DNA from: Chlorokybus atmophyticus
Lineage: Eukaryota > Plantae > Mesostigma and Chlorokybus algae
Length of the DNA stretch: 64,000 bases
Direction of reading: 5' to 3'
Assembly: GCA_009103225.1 (NCBI GenBank)
Contig: RHPI01003261.1
Location: 62,001-126,000, forward strand
The stretch's first letter is position 1. Each line of letters starts with the position of its first letter. A program made the position numbers and the translations under genes. Below the pieces are notes generated by a model. The model was given only the letters and a program-made list of their open reading frames with translations, was not told the DNA's origin and searched no databases. Positions 23,752 through 42,208 of the stretch are shown here, in pieces.

Positions 23752-26059
23752 ATGGCTGGCCGGTGGCGCGTCGTTAGTGTGGCTGGTGCATTGCTTCTGC
23801 TATCTGCTGTCGCTCCCTTCACGGCGGCGCTGCAGCTCAAATGGATCCCCGCAGATCAGCTGAACGGCGAGGACCAGGCTGAGCCTGGCAGCAGGCTGGA
23901 GAGCGGCGCTACTTCATCGGCTATCATGGCTGTGGAGGATAGGGTTACTGAGGTGCGGGAGCAGCAGGAGGAGGAGGCGCCTGTGGATTTTGGCAACATG
24001 CAAAGCATGCTGCACTGGGCAATTGGTACGTGGCCAGCTTGCTAGTTTTGCATGCATGGAGTAGCATGATTGGACGGTGTTTGTTTTGTGTTTTGTTTGG
24101 CTGTCTACACAGTTTGATCTTGTTATCTTGATTTTGAGCTGTGGATAACTGCGCAGCCATTGTGCATGTGCTCGTCGGTAGATAGTGTCATTGTTCCGCT
24201 GCAAAAGTAAGGAGCGTGAAAGGTTGCAGCAGAGTGTACCGGTTTGGTGCTGTTTGGCAACGGTTAGTTCCATAGGTAACAGATGACTGGCTGGTTGCAC
24301 CGTTGATTGCATGGATACTGCCGCAAGCACAAAGTGGCACACATAGCCACGTGCCTGGCTGCAACTCCTTTAACAGACAACTCCTAAACTAGTTTAATTA
24401 CCTTTGGCGCCATGGTATGTCAGTATGTTTGCACTCGCAGTGTAGTTACCGTATGAAGTGAACTGTGCTTACACCCATCTGTTTCTTATAGGGCACTCAG
24501 ACCCCAACGAGTTGCATCGCCAAGCGCACACAAAGAAGACATTGGCAGAGTTGGAGCAGCAGCGTCAAGAATTAAAGGTGGCTGCTTGATGTACAATGCA
24601 TGCATGTGTTCTGTGCGCAGAAGAAGTCGGCTTGTGAGAGGTGTTGTCGATTGTGCTTATGTCGCCTCCTGCAGGAAGTGATGGACCTCTTGCGCCTCCC
24701 TTCAGACGCTGAACTCATGACAAGCTCTATCAGCGTGCTGACAAACGAAACAAGCCCTGACATTGAACGGGAGCAGGCATTGCAGGAACTCCTGTATCTG
24801 GTGGAGCCCATTGATAATGCGAACGGTGCGTACACCACACTGGCATCTATGATGCTAAGGCATCTGGTGAAGAACAATACAAAATGTCTTGATTGCCGCT
24901 TGCCTTTGCAAGTTGCTATATGCTCCGCCTTGGTCAGTCGCGTTATGTACGACAGTTTACTTGGCCCATGTCCCCCCCCCCCGCGCGCGAGCGCGCGCGG
25001 TAGGTTGTTAACACTGTTTTTGTCTCAGACTTGCACAAGCTTGGTGGGCTTGAGGTGCTGGCGGGGTACTTGAGTGATTCCATACCTAGCTTACAGACAA
25101 CAGCTGCCTGGGCGTTGGGCACAGCCGCATCGAACAACCCGCTCGTGCAGGGTCAGGTATGCAACTGGCCGTGCAACCATCAGGTTGTTCCAACGATAGG
25201 AGAGTGTTAAGATGTCAAGTTTCAACAGATACTTGAGCTGGGTATCTTGGGAAAGCTGTTGCAAATGGTGGACACGAGTGATGTGGAGGGGCGTGTCAAG
25301 GGGCTGTTTGCCATCTCAGGTATGTGTTGGTCATGCATGACAGTGCATGCAGGGGTGGTCTGGCAGCATAGTGTTTGCCAGATACAGCAGCTGCAATGCA
25401 CTGAAGCAGAACAATGTTGTGGCAGCTGTCACACGCAACAACCCTGCAGCAGTCAAGGCGCTACAAGTCCTGGGTGGAATGGAAACTCTCCGCAACATCA
25501 TCTTGGACCCAGGCAAGGCACACCCAATTTGCATGCTCTCGGATGTGTGTAGCGGTTATGATTGGTTACATGGTTTTGCTGCCAGTGGCTCTGGTTTCTA
25601 TACTTGCTGATATTGACAGAGGCGGAACTGAGGCTCAAGCGAAAAGTCGTCTCATTGCTCGCTGATTGGCTACAAGACGGTAGCCTGTCTGTTGAAGCGC
25701 TCAGGAATGATACAATCGCCTGCGCATTTGTACACGCGTTGCAGCAACCTGATTGGGACTTGCGAGAAAAGGTATGATTTGCAGGGATGAACATCCAGTC
25801 GCTCATGCCCATCTGCACATACAAGGTTGTTTACCTGTTCACATGTACTGCGCAGTCTTTGCTTGCTATTCAGCTGCTTGTGGAGCAGCCGATGCACGAG
25901 CAGCTGTTTGCAGCATGCCCGCCGGCGTCTGCAATTGAACAGGTGCAAAGCGAGTTGACAGCTGCGCTTGAAGAAAATGGGGCGGATTTTAATGAAAGCT
26001 ACATGGCTGACCTACATAGTTTGTGTAGCTCTGTTCTAAGACACGTGCAGACTTCTTGA
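23752..26059 (+). CDS. SIL1: ER nucleotide exchange factor SIL1/Fes1 (HspBP1-like ARM repeats) with signal peptide
   Basis: Signal peptide MAGRWRVVSVAGALLLLSAVAPFTAA. MQSMLHWAIGHSDP (Fes1 N-terminal motif), ALQELLYLVEPIDNANDLHKLGGL, AAWALGTAASNNPLVQ, KGLFAIS. Confidence 0.88.
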
Positions 26060-30354: not shown

Positions 30355-32238
30355 ATGGCTGCCAGGGTTGCTACTGTAGTAGTAGTAGTAGCTGTTGTCC
30401 TGTTGACCACCTCCTTCGCCTCATGCAGCGCCTCCTCCTCCTCCTCCTCCTCCTCCTTTGCGTCCACCTCAGTAGCAGCCCAAATTGGCCGCTGGTTCCT
30501 GAGAGGCAACCCCATTGCCGGTAAGCACAAGTCCCTCCCCTAACACAAACCCACATATCCACACACCTACATACCCACATTGCTCACCCAACCCAACATG
30601 TCCAACACATGTCAAATAGTACTCACCCGCCTCTCTCTCTCTCTCAGCAGACACGCAGTCTCTCTCCCCTCAGCCCAACAACGACACAGCATCCCCACAT
30701 AGGCGTTCCCTGTTAGCAACAGATTGCCGCGCTGGCGACACATTAGCTCTAAAGTCATATGGCACAAACTCCCCCTCTGGTCCCGGCACCCCCGTGTCGA
30801 GCTTCGCGTACTCCAACGTCGGCGGAAGCGGCACGTACAACAGCGTGGTCAACATGCAGAGCGCACCCGTGTGGCCGCCGCCGTGCGCACTGCCAAGCGC
30901 CGCATCATGCGTCAAAGCACCAAGAGTGAGTGTGTTTGTTGGGAGTGTTGGTTGTTACTCAACCCAACATGTGGACTCATGTGTGTATGCGTGGTTACAG
31001 GTGTCCAAGGGTGTTCTTGCCCCGTTTCATGAGGAGCAGTCTATGCACTTCAGGGGTCCACTGGAGCTGTACAACCTTGCTGTGTATTATCCCAATGGGC
31101 AGGGCTCGTGGAAGCGCGTGTCCAACTTTGACCGCTGCAGGTGGGTGGGGATGCGACACAACAATTGCACACATACACATTGTGTGGAACTTCAACTTCG
31201 ACTTCAACTTCATGCATGAGGCTCACTGTGTGTTTTTGCAATTGCAGTCAGTCCAACATGGGATTCCTCAACAACAAGGGCGGCGGCCCCTCCGGCGTGT
31301 ACACAGTATGTGGCGGGTCGAGCCAAAGTTGGGCTTCAGCCGATGGAAAACAGCCCGAAAAATCAAACACACGCTTCTCGGGCTCACTCGCAGCAGACGT
31401 AGAGGTGAGTATATCTGACACACACACCCACAACTTGCGACACACAAACCAACATGCAACTAACTCACCTCCATGGGTCTCAGGTCAATGCGATGACGGG
31501 TCAGGCTTGCACGGGTTCCGCGTGCGGGTTCTTCCGGGGTGTGGGACAGAGAGGGTGGGCGGGGAATGCCAAGGGTGAGAAGATGTTCGTGCTGAGGTTG
31601 AGGATGCCGAAGGCGGGAGGGACCGACACGCCCGCGGTGTGGCTACTCAATGCACAGGTACGGAAGTTACACACGCATCATGCATGTGTGTGCCAATGTG
31701 TGAATGCGCGCATGCGCATGTATGCCTGAGTGCGCTTGTGCATGCACACATGCATGCACGTGTGTGTGTGTGTGTGTGGGTGGGTGTGGGTGGGTACAAT
31801 TGTGTGCGTGCGCGTGTGTGTGTGCTTGTCTGCATGCGTACACGCAGGCGAGTGTGCATTGCATCGATGCACATGTTGCTTACCACACCATTCTTCCCAC
31901 AGGTCCCTCGTTCCGCCCAATACGGTTGCAACTGCCGCGGCATGGGCGGCGACGGCGGTTGCGGCGAGTTGGACATCATGGAAGTCCTCACCGATCCTTC
32001 TCGCAAGTCCCAATGCATCAGTCAAATCTACTCTTTCAAGGGTTCCACTGGCACGGGTGCCCACTACTTCATCCGACCCGTGAACAAAGCCGTGACGGTG
32101 TTTGTTGTCTTTGGAGCAGATGGGATGGTGAAGATATCGACCGCGGGGGCGGATAGTTTCGGGTTCCCGAGATACGTGCAGCAGAATGCGATATCGAGGC
32201 AGTTCTTCGCGCGCACGCAGGCTTCAGTCATCTTCTGA
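30355..32238 (+). CDS. Secreted TOS1/YJL171C-like (DUF2403+DUF2401) putative GH16-type glucanase
   Basis: Signal peptide MAARVATVVVVVAVVLLTTSFA. FAYSNVGGSGTYNSV, LAPFHEEQSMHFRGPLELYNLAVY, FLNNKGG, KMFVLRLRMP, PAVWLLNAQVPRSAQYGCNCRG and GCGELDIMEV (ExDxxE). Confidence 0.85.
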
Positions 32239-33329: not shown

Positions 33330-35173
33330 CTACCCGCGTCCCGCGAGCACGTCCGGCTGACCATTGTTGCCCTTTGTCGAGGGCGCCTGGCTGTAAAACT
33401 TCGACCGGGTTGTCGGCACGACGGGTACAACACTGGCCGGTAACTTCTTCTCTTGAGCAGAAGTTAGCTGTTTCGGGTTTGGGTTGATCACCGCCACCTT
33501 CTTCGCAACACCCTTGTTATTATTGTTGGCAGCATTGACCTTGATAGGCACACTCTTGTTCGTGCTGTTTCGCTGCTGCTGGTGAGTGTGTGCCACCTTC
33601 AACACAATTGCTGCAGCCCCAACAACTACCCCGAGCTTGATCAACAGTCCAAACCTCGAGCCCGAGCGGTTGTCTTTGGGTTGTGCGCCTACCGGCCTCG
33701 TAGCGGGTGGCTTCGGAGCTGATGTTGGAGGAGGGGGAGTTGTTGTTGTTGTGTCGGGTCGGGATGTTGGCGGGTGAGCTCGCGTGTTGGCTGTAGCTGC
33801 GGGTGTTGCTGTTGGAGGCTGAGGGGGGTTGCTGTTGGGTGGGGGGATGACGTCGGCGACCATACGGCCCTCATCGTCGCTCATCATGTTCTCGTCCGTG
33901 TGCGTCGGGCTGGCGAGGTTGACTTGCTCGTCTCCGTCCCGTAGCAGCCTTCCCTCCACCCTGGCTCTGCAAGACAGGGTAATGCATGTTGGGTGGTTGA
34001 TGCAATGTGTGACAGAGTGCACACGTGCAAGCATGTGCACGTACGGTCACACCCATGACAACGAGCGAATGCACATGCACATGTGTTTGCCCAATGTTTG
34101 TCCATGCTCGACCGTGCTCACACATACACACGTGCACACACGCGCACACAAGCCTGCACGCGAGCATTAACACACCTTGTGGGGGTTGAGGCGGAGGTCT
34201 TAGCTCGAGGGGCGCTCCTGACTTGTGGCTTGTTGGGTGTCACTGGTGCTGTCACAGCTGCAGCAAGCACACGACATGTGTGAGTGCAAGTGCGAGGGAA
34301 TTACCCTCCCCCCCAAACCCAACAGTGGTACACATTTCTCACTGTGAGACAAACCTGCCGGTTCGGGTACAGGTGCCGCTGAAATGGGCTCGGGCCTGAA
34401 CGATGTGTAGTTGTTCGGCCTGTTGATGCTGGCTGTCTCTGATAAGAAGGAATCCACCGCGCCTGGAGTGCCATCCTGCAAAAGCCACCAATGATGTTTG
34501 ACAAATCCCACCTGCTGTGCCAACAAAACAGCACGTCACGACACGTGCTTACATGTCCTTCTTGAAGAAGACGCACCAGAGCGCTCCGGCTTTCGTCAAT
34601 CGAGCTGAGAGCTGCCGCCTGTGTGCAAATGACAACACAAGAAAACAACACTGAGATATGACAAGCTCTTAGTCTTGAGCAAATGTAGTAGTACCCAGCA
34701 TGCAGCGCACATGTCGACCACTGCAGATGCATTGCGACAGTAACTCGCATGCAGCGTGTGAGCAATCAACACTACGGATGGAGATATGCCACACAAATAG
34801 AGACACCGCACGCTGCTCGCGTTAAGCACGCGGGTAGCTGTATGCGTTACGACGAAAAGTATTTAGAAAGCAAGAAATTGAACCTACCCACACAGGCATA
34901 CACATATGCATAAATGCACAGGTGCAAAGGGGGGAGAGTGCATGCCTGTTCAAGTCGCTGCTGCAGCTCAATGGCGTTCATCTGTCGCAGCTGCGCTTCA
35001 AGCGAGTCGAGTGCGAGGCGGACGCTGCTGAGTCGCTCACCGCTGGCGGCGCCTGAGGGAGAGTCCGCCAGGCTGTTGGTGTAGTCATACTCGTAGTCGC
35101 CGCTTGCCCCTGCCCCTGAACCAGGCCGCATGCCAGACGCCGACGACCGCACCTCAGACGACGCGTCGCCCAT
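33330..35173 (-). CDS. PDV: PLASTID DIVISION (PDV1/PDV2)-like outer-envelope protein, 5 exons, predicted 377 aa
   Basis: Exons 35173-34946, 34618-34553, 34475-34355, 34257-34176 and 33966-33330 join in frame. Coiled coil ERLSSVRLALDSLEAQLRQMNAIELQQRLEQAAALSSIDESRSALVRLLQE, one TM (FGLLIKLGVVVGAAAIVLKV), C-terminus PDVLAGRG*. Confidence 0.8.
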
Positions 35174-38050: not shown

Positions 38051-39089
38051 TTAAATGCCAAGGGCCTCACTCATGGCTGTGTGCACCTGCGCAAGGGCAA
38101 ACAACATCAAGCACGGACAAGTTGCAGGTACATATTGACGAATTGACGAAAAACGACAACGTGGTCAAGGAGGGAGGAAATCCCCCTTTTACCTCAATAC
38201 CGATCTCAGCAATAGCTTGCTCTTGTTCCGTGCCGCTCTCAGCCTTGCGGGTATACTCAGCAAGACCTCGCTTGACGGCTTCAGGGTCGAGGTCCTTCAA
38301 GTTGACAGCCTCGACAACAACAACGTCGGCGCTGGAGTCAGCATGCACAAAAGCGAAGCCGCTGCTCACAAAGAGCTCCTCAACACTGTCGCCATCGTGA
38401 ATGCTCACGACTCCGGGCCGCAGTTGAGTCGCAGTGGGAACCTTGCCAGGCTCCACACCCAAGTAGCCTGCAGCTGATGGGAGCACAACCATGTCAACCT
38501 GCATGTATACAGTGTGGCTTGGTCAGTCCCAAGTCATGACCGCAGAGTGCAGAGGAGGGTTCAAACACAATACCTTCCTGTCTTCGTACTTGACTTCATG
38601 TGGCATGTAGAAGTTCAACAGGAGCTTCTCAGGGATAGCATCTGTTTTGGGTAGTTCAATTTTGCTGTGTTCCATGAAATCTGCAAGTCGCTTGGGAGGG
38701 TCCAAATTGGGCACGACCTGTTATGCAACCTGTTTTAGGAGCAGCATGCGGACGCCACCAACAACCAACAAGCGCAGAAGAAGCTGGCCAAATCTCCAAA
38801 TGGTGAGCATGATAGAAATAAGCATGGGCCTGATCAAAGCCTAATCAACCTCTGATCACATCTGCATGCAGTGCAGTGCAGTGCAGTACGTAAAGCAACC
38901 ATACCCCATAACATGCGCTGCATTGCAATGTGAGAGCACCGTCGTTGGGTCAACCATACCCACCTTCTTCCATTCCGAGGCAAAGTCCTTGACGACTCTG
39001 GGTGCCTCTGAGCTGACGAGCTGGTCCTCGCTTTGGCGCAGCACCCTGCTCGCGCGGGAAAACGCCCGCACGCTGTGCCTGAGCAACAT
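38051..39089 (-). CDS. ATP16: Mitochondrial ATP synthase F1 delta (delta') subunit
   Basis: Presequence MLLRHSVRAFSRASRVLR. KLLLNFYMPHE, VDMVVLPSAAGYLGVEPGKVPT, LRPGVVSIHDG, FVSSGFAFVHADS, DLDPEAVKRGL. Final exon VHTAMSEALGI*. Confidence 0.95.
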
Positions 39090-39260: not shown

Positions 39261-40279
39261 GCGCACAAGCAGTGTCGCACAGCTTGTGCGCAGCAACGCA
39301 CTGCTTGCCAATGGAATCATCCCAAGTGGCAGCGTCTCAGCATTGCTGTGCGGCTTGCCTGTGGCGGTGGCGGCGGTGGGGTCAGGGAAGTTAGGCTTTT
39401 GCTGTCACCCGTCAATTAGTGAAAAGATTGGTGAATGCAAGGGGTCAGGTGTCGAACGGCTGTCGGCGCTGCTTCCTGTGTGGGACAGGAGCTGGAATTG
39501 AGCTACTGAATTGAGCTGCCTACACCAGCTGGGTACAGGTGACGCAGCTGCTTGCTTCGTGCCAGCTTGTTCATCGTGAGCGGTGCAAATTGTTGCGTAG
39601 TGTCGTGATTCAGCGGAATTGTAGCTCTTTGGGGCGCCCAGTTGAGGCATTGCTTCCTCGGTGGCTGTTGAACTGATGAACTCTGCAACTGCTTAATGCT
39701 TGTGATGACAGTTACATGCATTTGCTGGCCAATGCTTAGAACAGGTTGGTAGGTGCAAGCGCTTGCAACATCTGTGGCGCGATTGGCATGCTTGACGCAC
39801 TGCATGCAGCAGTCCATGGGGACTTCACACTCGCAGCACTGGCAGACACTCATCTCAGCGAATTGCATGCAGGGGTGCGTTCGTAGTGTTGAAAAGCAGC
39901 TACTCAACAGTTGGAGAGGCTATCTTATAAAATTCTAAGATACATAAGCGGGCTTGGTCGACCCACAGAGGAGCTTCTCACCTCCTTGGACAGAGACATA
40001 GCCCACCTGTCATGCAGAGCGCGAAGCATGCTTGTGCTAGCTGGTGATAGGGCGCCCTTGGTGCTATGCAGGCAGCCATTGCAGGAACCTTCCACTAATG
40101 TTGCCAAGCAACCTCCCCTGCACGCTCGCACCAAACCACAAGCTCATCCGTTCACTCAGCGCTGCGGGTTGCTTTCGAGGCGGATGCTGAAACCCCTTAG
40201 TGTGGACATCTCGACAGACATTGTTCATCGGCGCAAGCCAACCACTGCTGGCAATCGAGACGGAGCGGAAGATGCGGAG

Positions 40280-42208
40280 ATGAGTTACATGGCGGACGAG
40301 CGCACGCCACTCCTTCCACAGAAGGGGGACAGCTCTGTTGAAACAGGTCAAAATGGTCAAGATGGCTTTTCAAGTATGGGACGCCCGCGCCATCTCATTG
40401 GTTACTGGATTTGCGGCCTTCTCAACAACTTTCAGTACGTAGTCTTTTTAACGGCAGCAGAGGACTTCCTGACCGGCTACTCTGGTGCGGTACGTAAAGG
40501 TGTTTGATCGGTTGTATGTACTTGTCTTACTGACTAGTACGGCTTGATGGTGCGGCAGGTGCTTCTAGCTGACATATTGCCTGCACTGCTCGCAAAGGGG
40601 ATCCTCCCGCTGTTCATGCACAGGCTTGGGTAAGGCTGCCCGTATGCCAGCTACTGCGCTTGCACTGCTGCTCCTAACTGTACTTCTGTGAAGGTCAGCA
40701 TTGATAGTTAACGACTCAATTTTCGCTGGTAACTAACACAGCCGCTGTGGGTAGTGCAGGTACAGACCTCGTGTGTTCGCAGTCGTGTTGTTGGCCATCA
40801 CAGCTTTTTTGGTGGTTGCCTCCGCCAAAGGCGATGTGCCAGTAGTGCTATTTGGTGTTGTTCTCGCGAGTCTGGCCTCCGGTATTGGGGAAAACACATT
40901 TCTCGCGTCTACCTCACGCTTCTCAAAGAACACTGTCAGCGCCTGGTCTTCTGGCACTGGAGCAGCAGGCCTGGCTGGTAAGCACATCACTCTTGTCATT
41001 GTACAACACTTTGCGCTGGAGGCTTGCAGCTTGCTTATAAGACTGCACATTTGCTACTCCCTTGCATGAACATTGTGTCATGGAGGCTGATGTGTCACAA
41101 ACCACCTGTATGCAGGTGCTGGTGCGTGGGTAATACTGCACAACGTGCTGAGCTTAAGCACGCAGCATGCGCTGCTGCTGATGGCACCTCTGCCGCTTGT
41201 GATCGCCTTCGCCTATCTAACATTGTTGGAACCTGGAACCAACATGGAGGCGACAATAGAAGTTGTCAGCAAGGTTGGCGATAGCGAGCAGGGGCTACCA
41301 CTGCTGCAAGATGGCACACGTAATAATAAAGACGTCACTGGTATGTTGTCACTTTCGGTAGTGGCGCATTTCGATGCACAAACACTTGCGCTATGCAGGA
41401 TGTATGCAGTGCTCAGCTTCATGGTTTGTGTGTAGGATGGGAGCTTTTGCAGGCTGTGCAGCCTGTCATAGCACGGTACATGGTGCCTCTAGTGTTGGTG
41501 TACTACCTCGAGTACACAATCAATCAAGCTCTGTTCCTTCCACTGGGACTGGCAATTTATGGCGCCTCCAGCACAAAGGGCGCATGTCACATGTATACTT
41601 ACCTCCAAACAACGTACCAGGTCTGTGCTGCATAATGTTAATGCGCTGTATGCTGGCTTGCGTAAGCCTGACACCTGATGTTTTGGGAAAGGTGGGCGTG
41701 TTTGTATCCCGGTCGTCAGTGAATGTATTCCCGTTGAAGCGCCTGTGGCCGCTGCCTGTGTTTCAAGGCATCAATCTGTTGCTAGCACTTACCTACATAC
41801 TCGCTGCCCCAAGCACAGAGGTGGGTGTCTTTGGTCTCATATGCATACGCGTGCCTGAGCGCGTTTGCGTCTCTGTGCGCTCAGGCATACAGAGCTGCTT
41901 GTATTGATTGCTTCAGTGACCAACTTGCACACGAGACACATGCTATCATCTGGCAGGGAGTCTTGGGCTCTACAATCCCACTCTTCGCTGTGTATGTGAT
42001 GGTCTTGTGGGAGGGCCTTCTAGGCGGAGCGTGTTATGTCAACGCGTTCACGCTTATCTCGGCATCCGTGCCGTCCGCGCGTCGAGAATTCGCATTGGGA
42101 GTTAGCAGCCTGGCCGATAGCGTTGGGATTAGCCTAGCCGCCGTCACGTCACTCCTGCTCGAACAGCCGCTGCTGCATCATCTTGGCGTGCAAACGCTCA
42201 AGTGTTGA
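40280..42208 (+). CDS. CLN3: CLN3/Battenin (BTN1) vacuolar/lysosomal membrane protein
   Basis: YWICGLLNNFQYVVFLTAAED, VLLADILP, LASLASGIGENTFL, AWSSGTGAAG, PLVLVYYLEYTINQ, VFVSRSS, EGLLGGACYVN, REFALG. An alternative in-frame upstream ATG lies near 40185. Confidence 0.93.

Follow-up and report, generated by a model that had tools for sequence, protein, structure and literature searches.

The gene described here lies on the minus strand at positions 33330-35173 of a 64,000-nt window of the Chlorokybus atmophyticus genome (contig RHPI01003261.1), the window being the whole stretch of DNA that was analyzed. A word-based search of 5.8 billion proteins with the open reading frame (ORF) of its last exon matched a single protein, eukprot jgi/Chlat1/7919/Chrsp68S07384 (351 aa; P0001 below), from C. 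atmophyticus, a member of the class Chlorokybophyceae in the Streptophyta. A preliminary description made from the sequence alone had read the gene as a PDV-like plastid division gene in an apparently algal genome. The source is a streptophyte alga and not a land plant, and the comparisons given below support well the assignment of the predicted product to the PDV family, with land-plant PDV2 as its closest relative among the sequences compared.

Five exons on the minus strand were rebuilt from the window, and the spliced protein used in the local tests was assembled from the window sequence. Spliced in frame, the exons gave 1134 nt encoding 377 aa with no internal stop. Exon 1 (34946-35173, residues 1-76) starts with an ATG at 35173-35171 that has an A at -3 and a G at +4 and is preceded by an in-frame stop 12 codons upstream; the exon is followed by a GC donor (CAG/GCATGC, the slash marking the exon boundary). 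Intron 1 (34619-34945, 327 nt) is of the GC-AG type (CAG/GCATGC ... CACAG/GCG), and introns 2-4 are GT-AG. Exon 2 (34553-34618) encodes residues 77-98 (AAALSSIDESR...), which hold the latter half of the conserved PDV block. Exon 3 (34355-34475) and exon 4 (34176-34257) are the same as in the annotated protein P0001. Exon 5 (33330-33966) encodes a linker, a transmembrane (TM) helix and the tail assigned to the intermembrane space, and it ends in PDVLAGRG followed by a TAG stop at 33332-33330. The five-exon chain, the 377-aa product, its C-terminus, the single TM segment and the Pro/Thr-rich linker had all been proposed in the preliminary description and were recovered from the window; the GC-AG nature of intron 1 went unmentioned there. 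Because the length of intron 1 is divisible by three, exons 1 and 2 stand in one genomic reading frame; the intron contains stop codons, which rules out read-through.

Sequences for comparison were reached through published peptides. File 5 of the supplement of Simm et al. (2013) lists mass spectrometry peptides of the pea orthologue of At2g16070 (PDV2), including LLNICDALEALETQLSSLQVLQQQQR, YEREIALAEIENSRK and the C-terminal ERVEVPFSSVAATPDINYGSG (PMC3565376). A query in which LLNICDALEALETQLSSLQVLQQQQR and YEREIALAEIENSRK were joined and aligned with part of P0001 returned 35 proteins (P0004-P0038), which mostly bore the name 'plastid division protein PDV2' and came from legumes, Cannabis, Humulus, Carya and Juglans. 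These proteins were obtained by construction of the query, so they are uninformative on Chlorokybus and served as comparison material only. The two pea peptides are contiguous in P0004-P0009 and in P0011, and 33 of the 35 had a precomputed Pfam match to PF28116.1, the exceptions being P0029 and P0032. The main profile hidden Markov model was built from 29 full-length PDV2s, with the Chlorokybus sequence excluded.

This profile matched the 377-aa model with 28.1 bits and a per-sequence P of 5e-11, which corresponds to an E of about 5e-7 for a proteome of about 10^4 proteins, the size we take the Chlorokybus proteome to have. Profile positions 45-97 aligned without gaps to residues 44-96, a coiled-coil block of 53 residues at 34559-35044 (coding parts 35044-34946 and 34618-34559, with intron 1 between them) that spans the junction of exons 1 and 2. 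A profile of five non-legume PDV2s gave 29.0 bits, and pairwise phmmer comparisons of PDV2s with the 377-aa model gave 23-28 bits. When the block was shuffled 20,000 times with its hydrophobic/polar pattern preserved, no shuffle reached 28.1 bits (maximum 23.9; P roughly 1e-6 by extrapolation of the tail), and the maximum for plain shuffles was 9.1 bits. The exon-1 ORF was the top match to the PDV2 profile among 1,028 ORF segments of the window.

The joined pea peptides gave a concordant picture. They aligned without gaps to residues 54-87, again over the exon 1/2 junction, with a BLOSUM62 score of 74 that was reached by 0 of 20,000 plain shuffles and 3 of 20,000 shuffles preserving the hydrophobic pattern; the score against the annotated protein was 27, which was matched by 729 of 5,000 shuffles. 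Used singly, the two peptides matched adjacent segments in the right order (residues 54-73 and 75-87). By tblastn, the best match of the joined peptide in the window was exon 1 (E = 0.002). The conserved block of the family (RL..I..AL[ED].LE.QL ... QQ.YE...AL.EI[ED].SR..L..L.E) was matched by the GC-donor model only. Compared with the fetched orthologues of PDV2 (At2g16070), the block is about 40% identical over 52 aa without gaps, and the residue number of its start is that of legume PDV2s. The gapless coiled-coil match to PDV2 that the preliminary description had given was reproduced with the pea peptides and with named rosid PDV2s, the Arabidopsis protein not being among them. The two halves of the block, residues 51-76 and 77-98 (35023-34946 and 34618-34553), are also like each other (ALDSLEAQL... 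and ALSSIDESR...) and were repeatedly superposed by MAFFT; this likeness could reflect an old internal repeat or mere heptad similarity.

The annotated protein P0001 is identical to the 377-aa model except at one junction. The two agree in exons 2-5 and over the first 150 nt of exon 1, and P0001 is without 26 residues (VRLALD...RLEQ) encoded by 78 nt at 34946-35023; the public model exits exon 1 at an earlier GT donor (AGC/GTCCGC, 35023), so that this segment is spliced out in the annotation and kept in the 377-aa model. The composition of the 78 nt was exon-like (log-likelihood ratio +6.4 bits, reached by 0 of 590 intron windows), that of the 42-54 nt past the GC donor was intron-like (-6 to -10 bits), and the change from one to the other fell exactly at the GC donor (34945). 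The annotated donor GTCCGC, with a C before it, was a poor fit to the other donors of the gene (CAT/GTAAGC, CAG/GTTTGT and AAG/GTGTGT). With the PDV2 profile, the annotated model scored 0.6 bits, compared with 28.1 bits for the GC-donor model, and the gapless 53-residue match was restored by the GC junction only. Two other in-phase GT donors, at 34903 and 34891, were tried and rejected; they add 14-18 intron-like residues, and the PDV2 score falls to 8-12 bits.

The PDV2 match, the composition and the donor fit together favor the GC at 34945 as the probable donor. Most likely, Chrsp68S07384 mis-splices intron 1 by using the weak GT at 35023 in place of this GC, which would delete 26 aa of the PDV block. 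It counts against the GC donor that the public annotation picked another one, and GC-AG introns are a small minority in eukaryotes. The locus might then be a true PDV-family gene whose real or main mRNA encodes the annotated 351-aa isoform, with half of the conserved block absent and the gene degenerate or differently spliced. We regard this as quite unlikely in view of the poorly fitting GT donor, the exon-like 78 nt with their sharp compositional border and the dependence of the PDV2 match on the GC junction; in addition, gene predictors often accept GT donors only.

Outside the block, the predicted architecture of the 377-aa protein also resembled that of PDV2. Its strongest hydrophobic stretch, residues 271-291 (FGLLIKLGVVVGAAAIVLKVA; 33591-33653), reached a Kyte-Doolittle maximum of 2.3 in a 19-residue window and is the predicted TM helix; 86 residues follow it. 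The topology predicted from the sequence is bitopic, with a long N-terminal region, one TM segment and a C-terminal region within 70-90 aa, and residues 101-165 and 208-250 are rich in Pro, Thr and Ala. Family and architecture are likewise those of PDV1 (At5g53280). The block motif AL[ED].LE.QL starts at residue 54, compared with residues 41-86 in the 29 PDV2s (53-56 in most legumes); the TM segment starts at about residue 271-273, compared with 178-223; and the 86 residues past it compare with 72-86. The Pro/Thr-rich linker of the Chlorokybus protein is about 80 aa longer than that of PDV2 (377 aa in total vs 276-320 aa). The intermembrane region is barely alignable to its PDV2 counterpart, with about 20 additional aa inserted ahead of the tail.

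The C-terminal tail PDVLAGRG (33333-33356) is conserved and ends in Gly, with the stop directly after it, so the terminal Gly that the preliminary description held to be kept is indeed present. The fetched PDV2 tails read PD[IV][NY]YG[CSL]G; the single TM segment, the length of the intermembrane region and a Gly-ended PD[IV]xxGxG tail are common to PDV2 and the Chlorokybus protein, whereas the last residues differ (LAGRG vs NYG[CS]G). An end-anchored comparison of the last eight residues gave a chance probability of about 1e-4, and among all ORF segments of the window the pattern PD[IVL]..G.G had a single occurrence, at the C-terminus of the model. The PDV1 tail, which ends in ...ARG, is presumably nearer to the ...GRG of Chlorokybus. 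Local alignment of the intermembrane parts paired (K/R)V.V and (I/L)P.S.V...P, and past the block PNN.....P.P was shared at a PDV2-like spacing; neither was significant alone.

Several observations weigh against assignment to the PDV family. Similarity was weak except over the 53-aa block and the C-terminal 8 residues: the next 40 aa past the block gave a nonsignificant P of 0.06, and the profile left the intermembrane region unaligned. The N-terminal helix MEEEGIGLVLARATELR.KI, present in all fetched rosid PDV2s, had no counterpart in the alignment of the 377-aa protein, and tblastn of the upstream DNA found no nearby exon encoding it. The comparison set consisted of rosid PDV2s only, without PDV1 and without bryophyte or charophyte PDVs. 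A phmmer search of 1.84 billion proteins with residues 26-76 from exon 1 returned only the annotated protein of this gene and two spurious repeat proteins; word-based searches with the exon-5 ORF and with residues 40-110 of P0001 returned that annotated protein only. No match was found with the exon pieces and P0001 in a copy of Pfam that lacks PF28116, nothing relevant was found in the PDB by phmmer with the intermembrane region and exon 1, and P0001 has no precomputed PF28116 match.

Little weight attaches to these database negatives. Even the full block reaches only some 28 bits, equivalent to an E of about 0.1 in the 1.84-billion library, and each half scores less, so the searches with exon pieces were underpowered; the missing PF28116 match of P0001 is expected from its truncated block. 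A PDB search with the published crystallization linker plus tail returned other fusion constructs and no ARC6-PDV2 or PARC6-PDV1 chains, and scans of metagenomes for relatives of the protein found none.

The alternative to which these points lead is a coiled-coil membrane protein that is specific to the lineage and has no relation to PDV, in which chance or convergent heptad similarity is combined with a fortuitous Gly end. Coiled coils inflate scores, as the shuffles reaching 23.9 bits illustrate, the significant similarity is limited to 53 coiled-coil residues, and both the missing N-terminal helix and the unsuccessful searches with exon pieces would fit such a protein. However, none of the 20,000 heptad-pattern-preserving shuffles equaled the observed score, and the match is gapless at an N-terminal distance like that in legume PDV2s. 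The tail match is independent of the block, the TM position and intermembrane length agree, and the exon 1 and exon 2 halves of the block each match neighboring PDV2 segments in the right order. We therefore consider an unrelated protein very improbable. The reading of the preliminary description, a PDV-family gene, is borne out by the 28.1-bit score to a PDV2-only profile, the matching architecture and the Gly C-terminus, and it is likely that PDV homology holds jointly with the GC-donor 377-aa model as the correct product.

PDVs of other streptophyte algae have already been published. A PDV is reported for Klebsormidium (GAQ78465; PMC5398205), and the table of reciprocal best BLAST hits (RBBH) of MacLeod et al. 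(2022) lists PDV2 for Klebsormidium and for Chara (g41289.t1), with the cells for PDV1, PDV2, PARC6 and ARC5 empty for Chlorokybus and Mesostigma (PMC8964177 Table S5). One PDV1/2 orthologue is retained in Spirogyra (PMC13519894). A 2026 review, with reference to Liu et al. 2024, states that PDV1/2 'originated in charophytes' (PMC13650779), and 'PDV2 in streptophytes' is the wording of another source (PMC11285052). PDV1 and PARC6 are given a later origin in ferns (PMC11285052) or an origin in charophytes (PMC13650779). The Klebsormidium, Chara and Spirogyra PDVs are single-copy and streptophyte-algal, which makes the family older than land plants, and all three belong to lineages that diverged later than Chlorokybus.

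The presence of the family in streptophyte algae is thus established. The preliminary description had suggested that the gene may be a PDV from before the duplication, combining PDV1 and PDV2 traits, and that the PDV module arose earlier than the land plants; it had cautioned that streptophyte-algal homologues might already be reported. A PDV in a streptophyte alga stands, but as stated this is not new, and the caution was justified by the publications on Klebsormidium, Chara and zygnematophytes. What is new is the extension to the deepest streptophyte branch, a modest and incremental step that is apparently undocumented as far as the literature could be read; literature searches by gene id, or for PDV2 together with Mesostigma or Chlorokybus, yielded nothing specific on a Chlorokybus PDV. 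The truncated public gene model may explain how the Chlorokybus PDV could be missed in the RBBH survey.

Judged by analogy to PDV1 and PDV2 of Arabidopsis, the protein would reside in the outer envelope and expose its N-terminus to the cytosol. In the intermembrane space, its C-terminal tail, through the free carboxylate of the last Gly, would dock in a pocket of the C-terminal domain of ARC6. Such docking would put the protein at the division site defined by FtsZ and ARC6, where the cytosolic part may help to recruit the dynamin DRP5B. In the PARC6-PDV1 structure, the carboxylate of the PDV1 terminal Gly makes polar contacts in the PARC6 pocket (PMC9945983). Localization and binding in Chlorokybus are carried over by this analogy only, which counts against the functional part of our reading, as does the lack of an ARC5/DRP5B entry for Chlorokybus in the RBBH survey (PMC8964177 Table S5).

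Chlorokybus may accordingly have a PDV homologue that is no ARC6-to-DRP5B adaptor and that plays another envelope or signaling role, or an ancestral role without the N-terminal helix. Spirogyra keeps its PDV1/2 despite the reported absence of FtsZ, ARC6, PARC6 and ARC5, and the gene is co-expressed there with chloroplast signaling genes (PMC13519894); this case warns that a retained PDV need not mean a canonical machinery. The absent N-terminal helix, the long linker and the empty ARC5 cell would suit a non-adaptor as well. In contrast, the tail that would dock to ARC6 or PARC6 is conserved, terminal Gly included, and an ARC6 of Chlorokybus is reported, Chrsp17S02703 (PMC8964177 Table S5). A blank RBBH cell is weak evidence of absence, as the Chlorokybus PDV gene itself illustrates. 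On balance, a PDV homologue without the adaptor role seems unlikely, and a putative ARC6-to-DRP5B adaptor is the function we prefer.

Other ORFs of the window matched Pfam domains. Just past the 3' end of the PDV gene and on the opposite strand, an ORF at 31639-32235 (+) matched the YJL171C/Tos1 C-terminal domain of a cell-wall protein (E 1.8e-16). The ORFs at 39911-40504 (+) and 41374-41904 (+) matched the start and a later part of the CLN3 (battenin) family, each below the gathering threshold, and they resemble exons of a single CLN3-like gene. An ATP synthase delta/epsilon beta-sandwich domain was found in the ORF at 38070-38504 (-; E 3e-12) and a Fes1 nucleotide-exchange-factor domain in the ORF at 24600-25070 (+; E 1e-9), both ordinary nuclear genes.

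PDVs connect the inner FtsZ/ARC6 ring with the outer dynamin ring, and they determine how fast chloroplasts divide in land plants. We tentatively propose, as a possibility still short of an even chance, that a PDV was present in the common streptophyte ancestor and exists in the monoplastidic Chlorokybophyceae, on the deepest branch, from before the rise of PDV1, PARC6 and polyplastidy, that it was overlooked through its GC-AG intron, and that the ancestral form consisted of the block, the TM segment and the Gly-ended tail without the N-terminal helix. If this is true, the Chlorokybus PDV would place the host-derived outer adaptor at the base of the Streptophyta, in an alga whose cells have one plastid each, and would set the origin of PDV apart from the many-plastid state that evolved later. 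A single GC-AG intron in the annotation suffices to hide this gene from reciprocal BLAST, so tables of presence and absence for early streptophyte algae need care. The gene would then offer a minimal, pre-duplication PDV with which to ask which of the block, the tail and the N-terminal helix is ancestral in the family.

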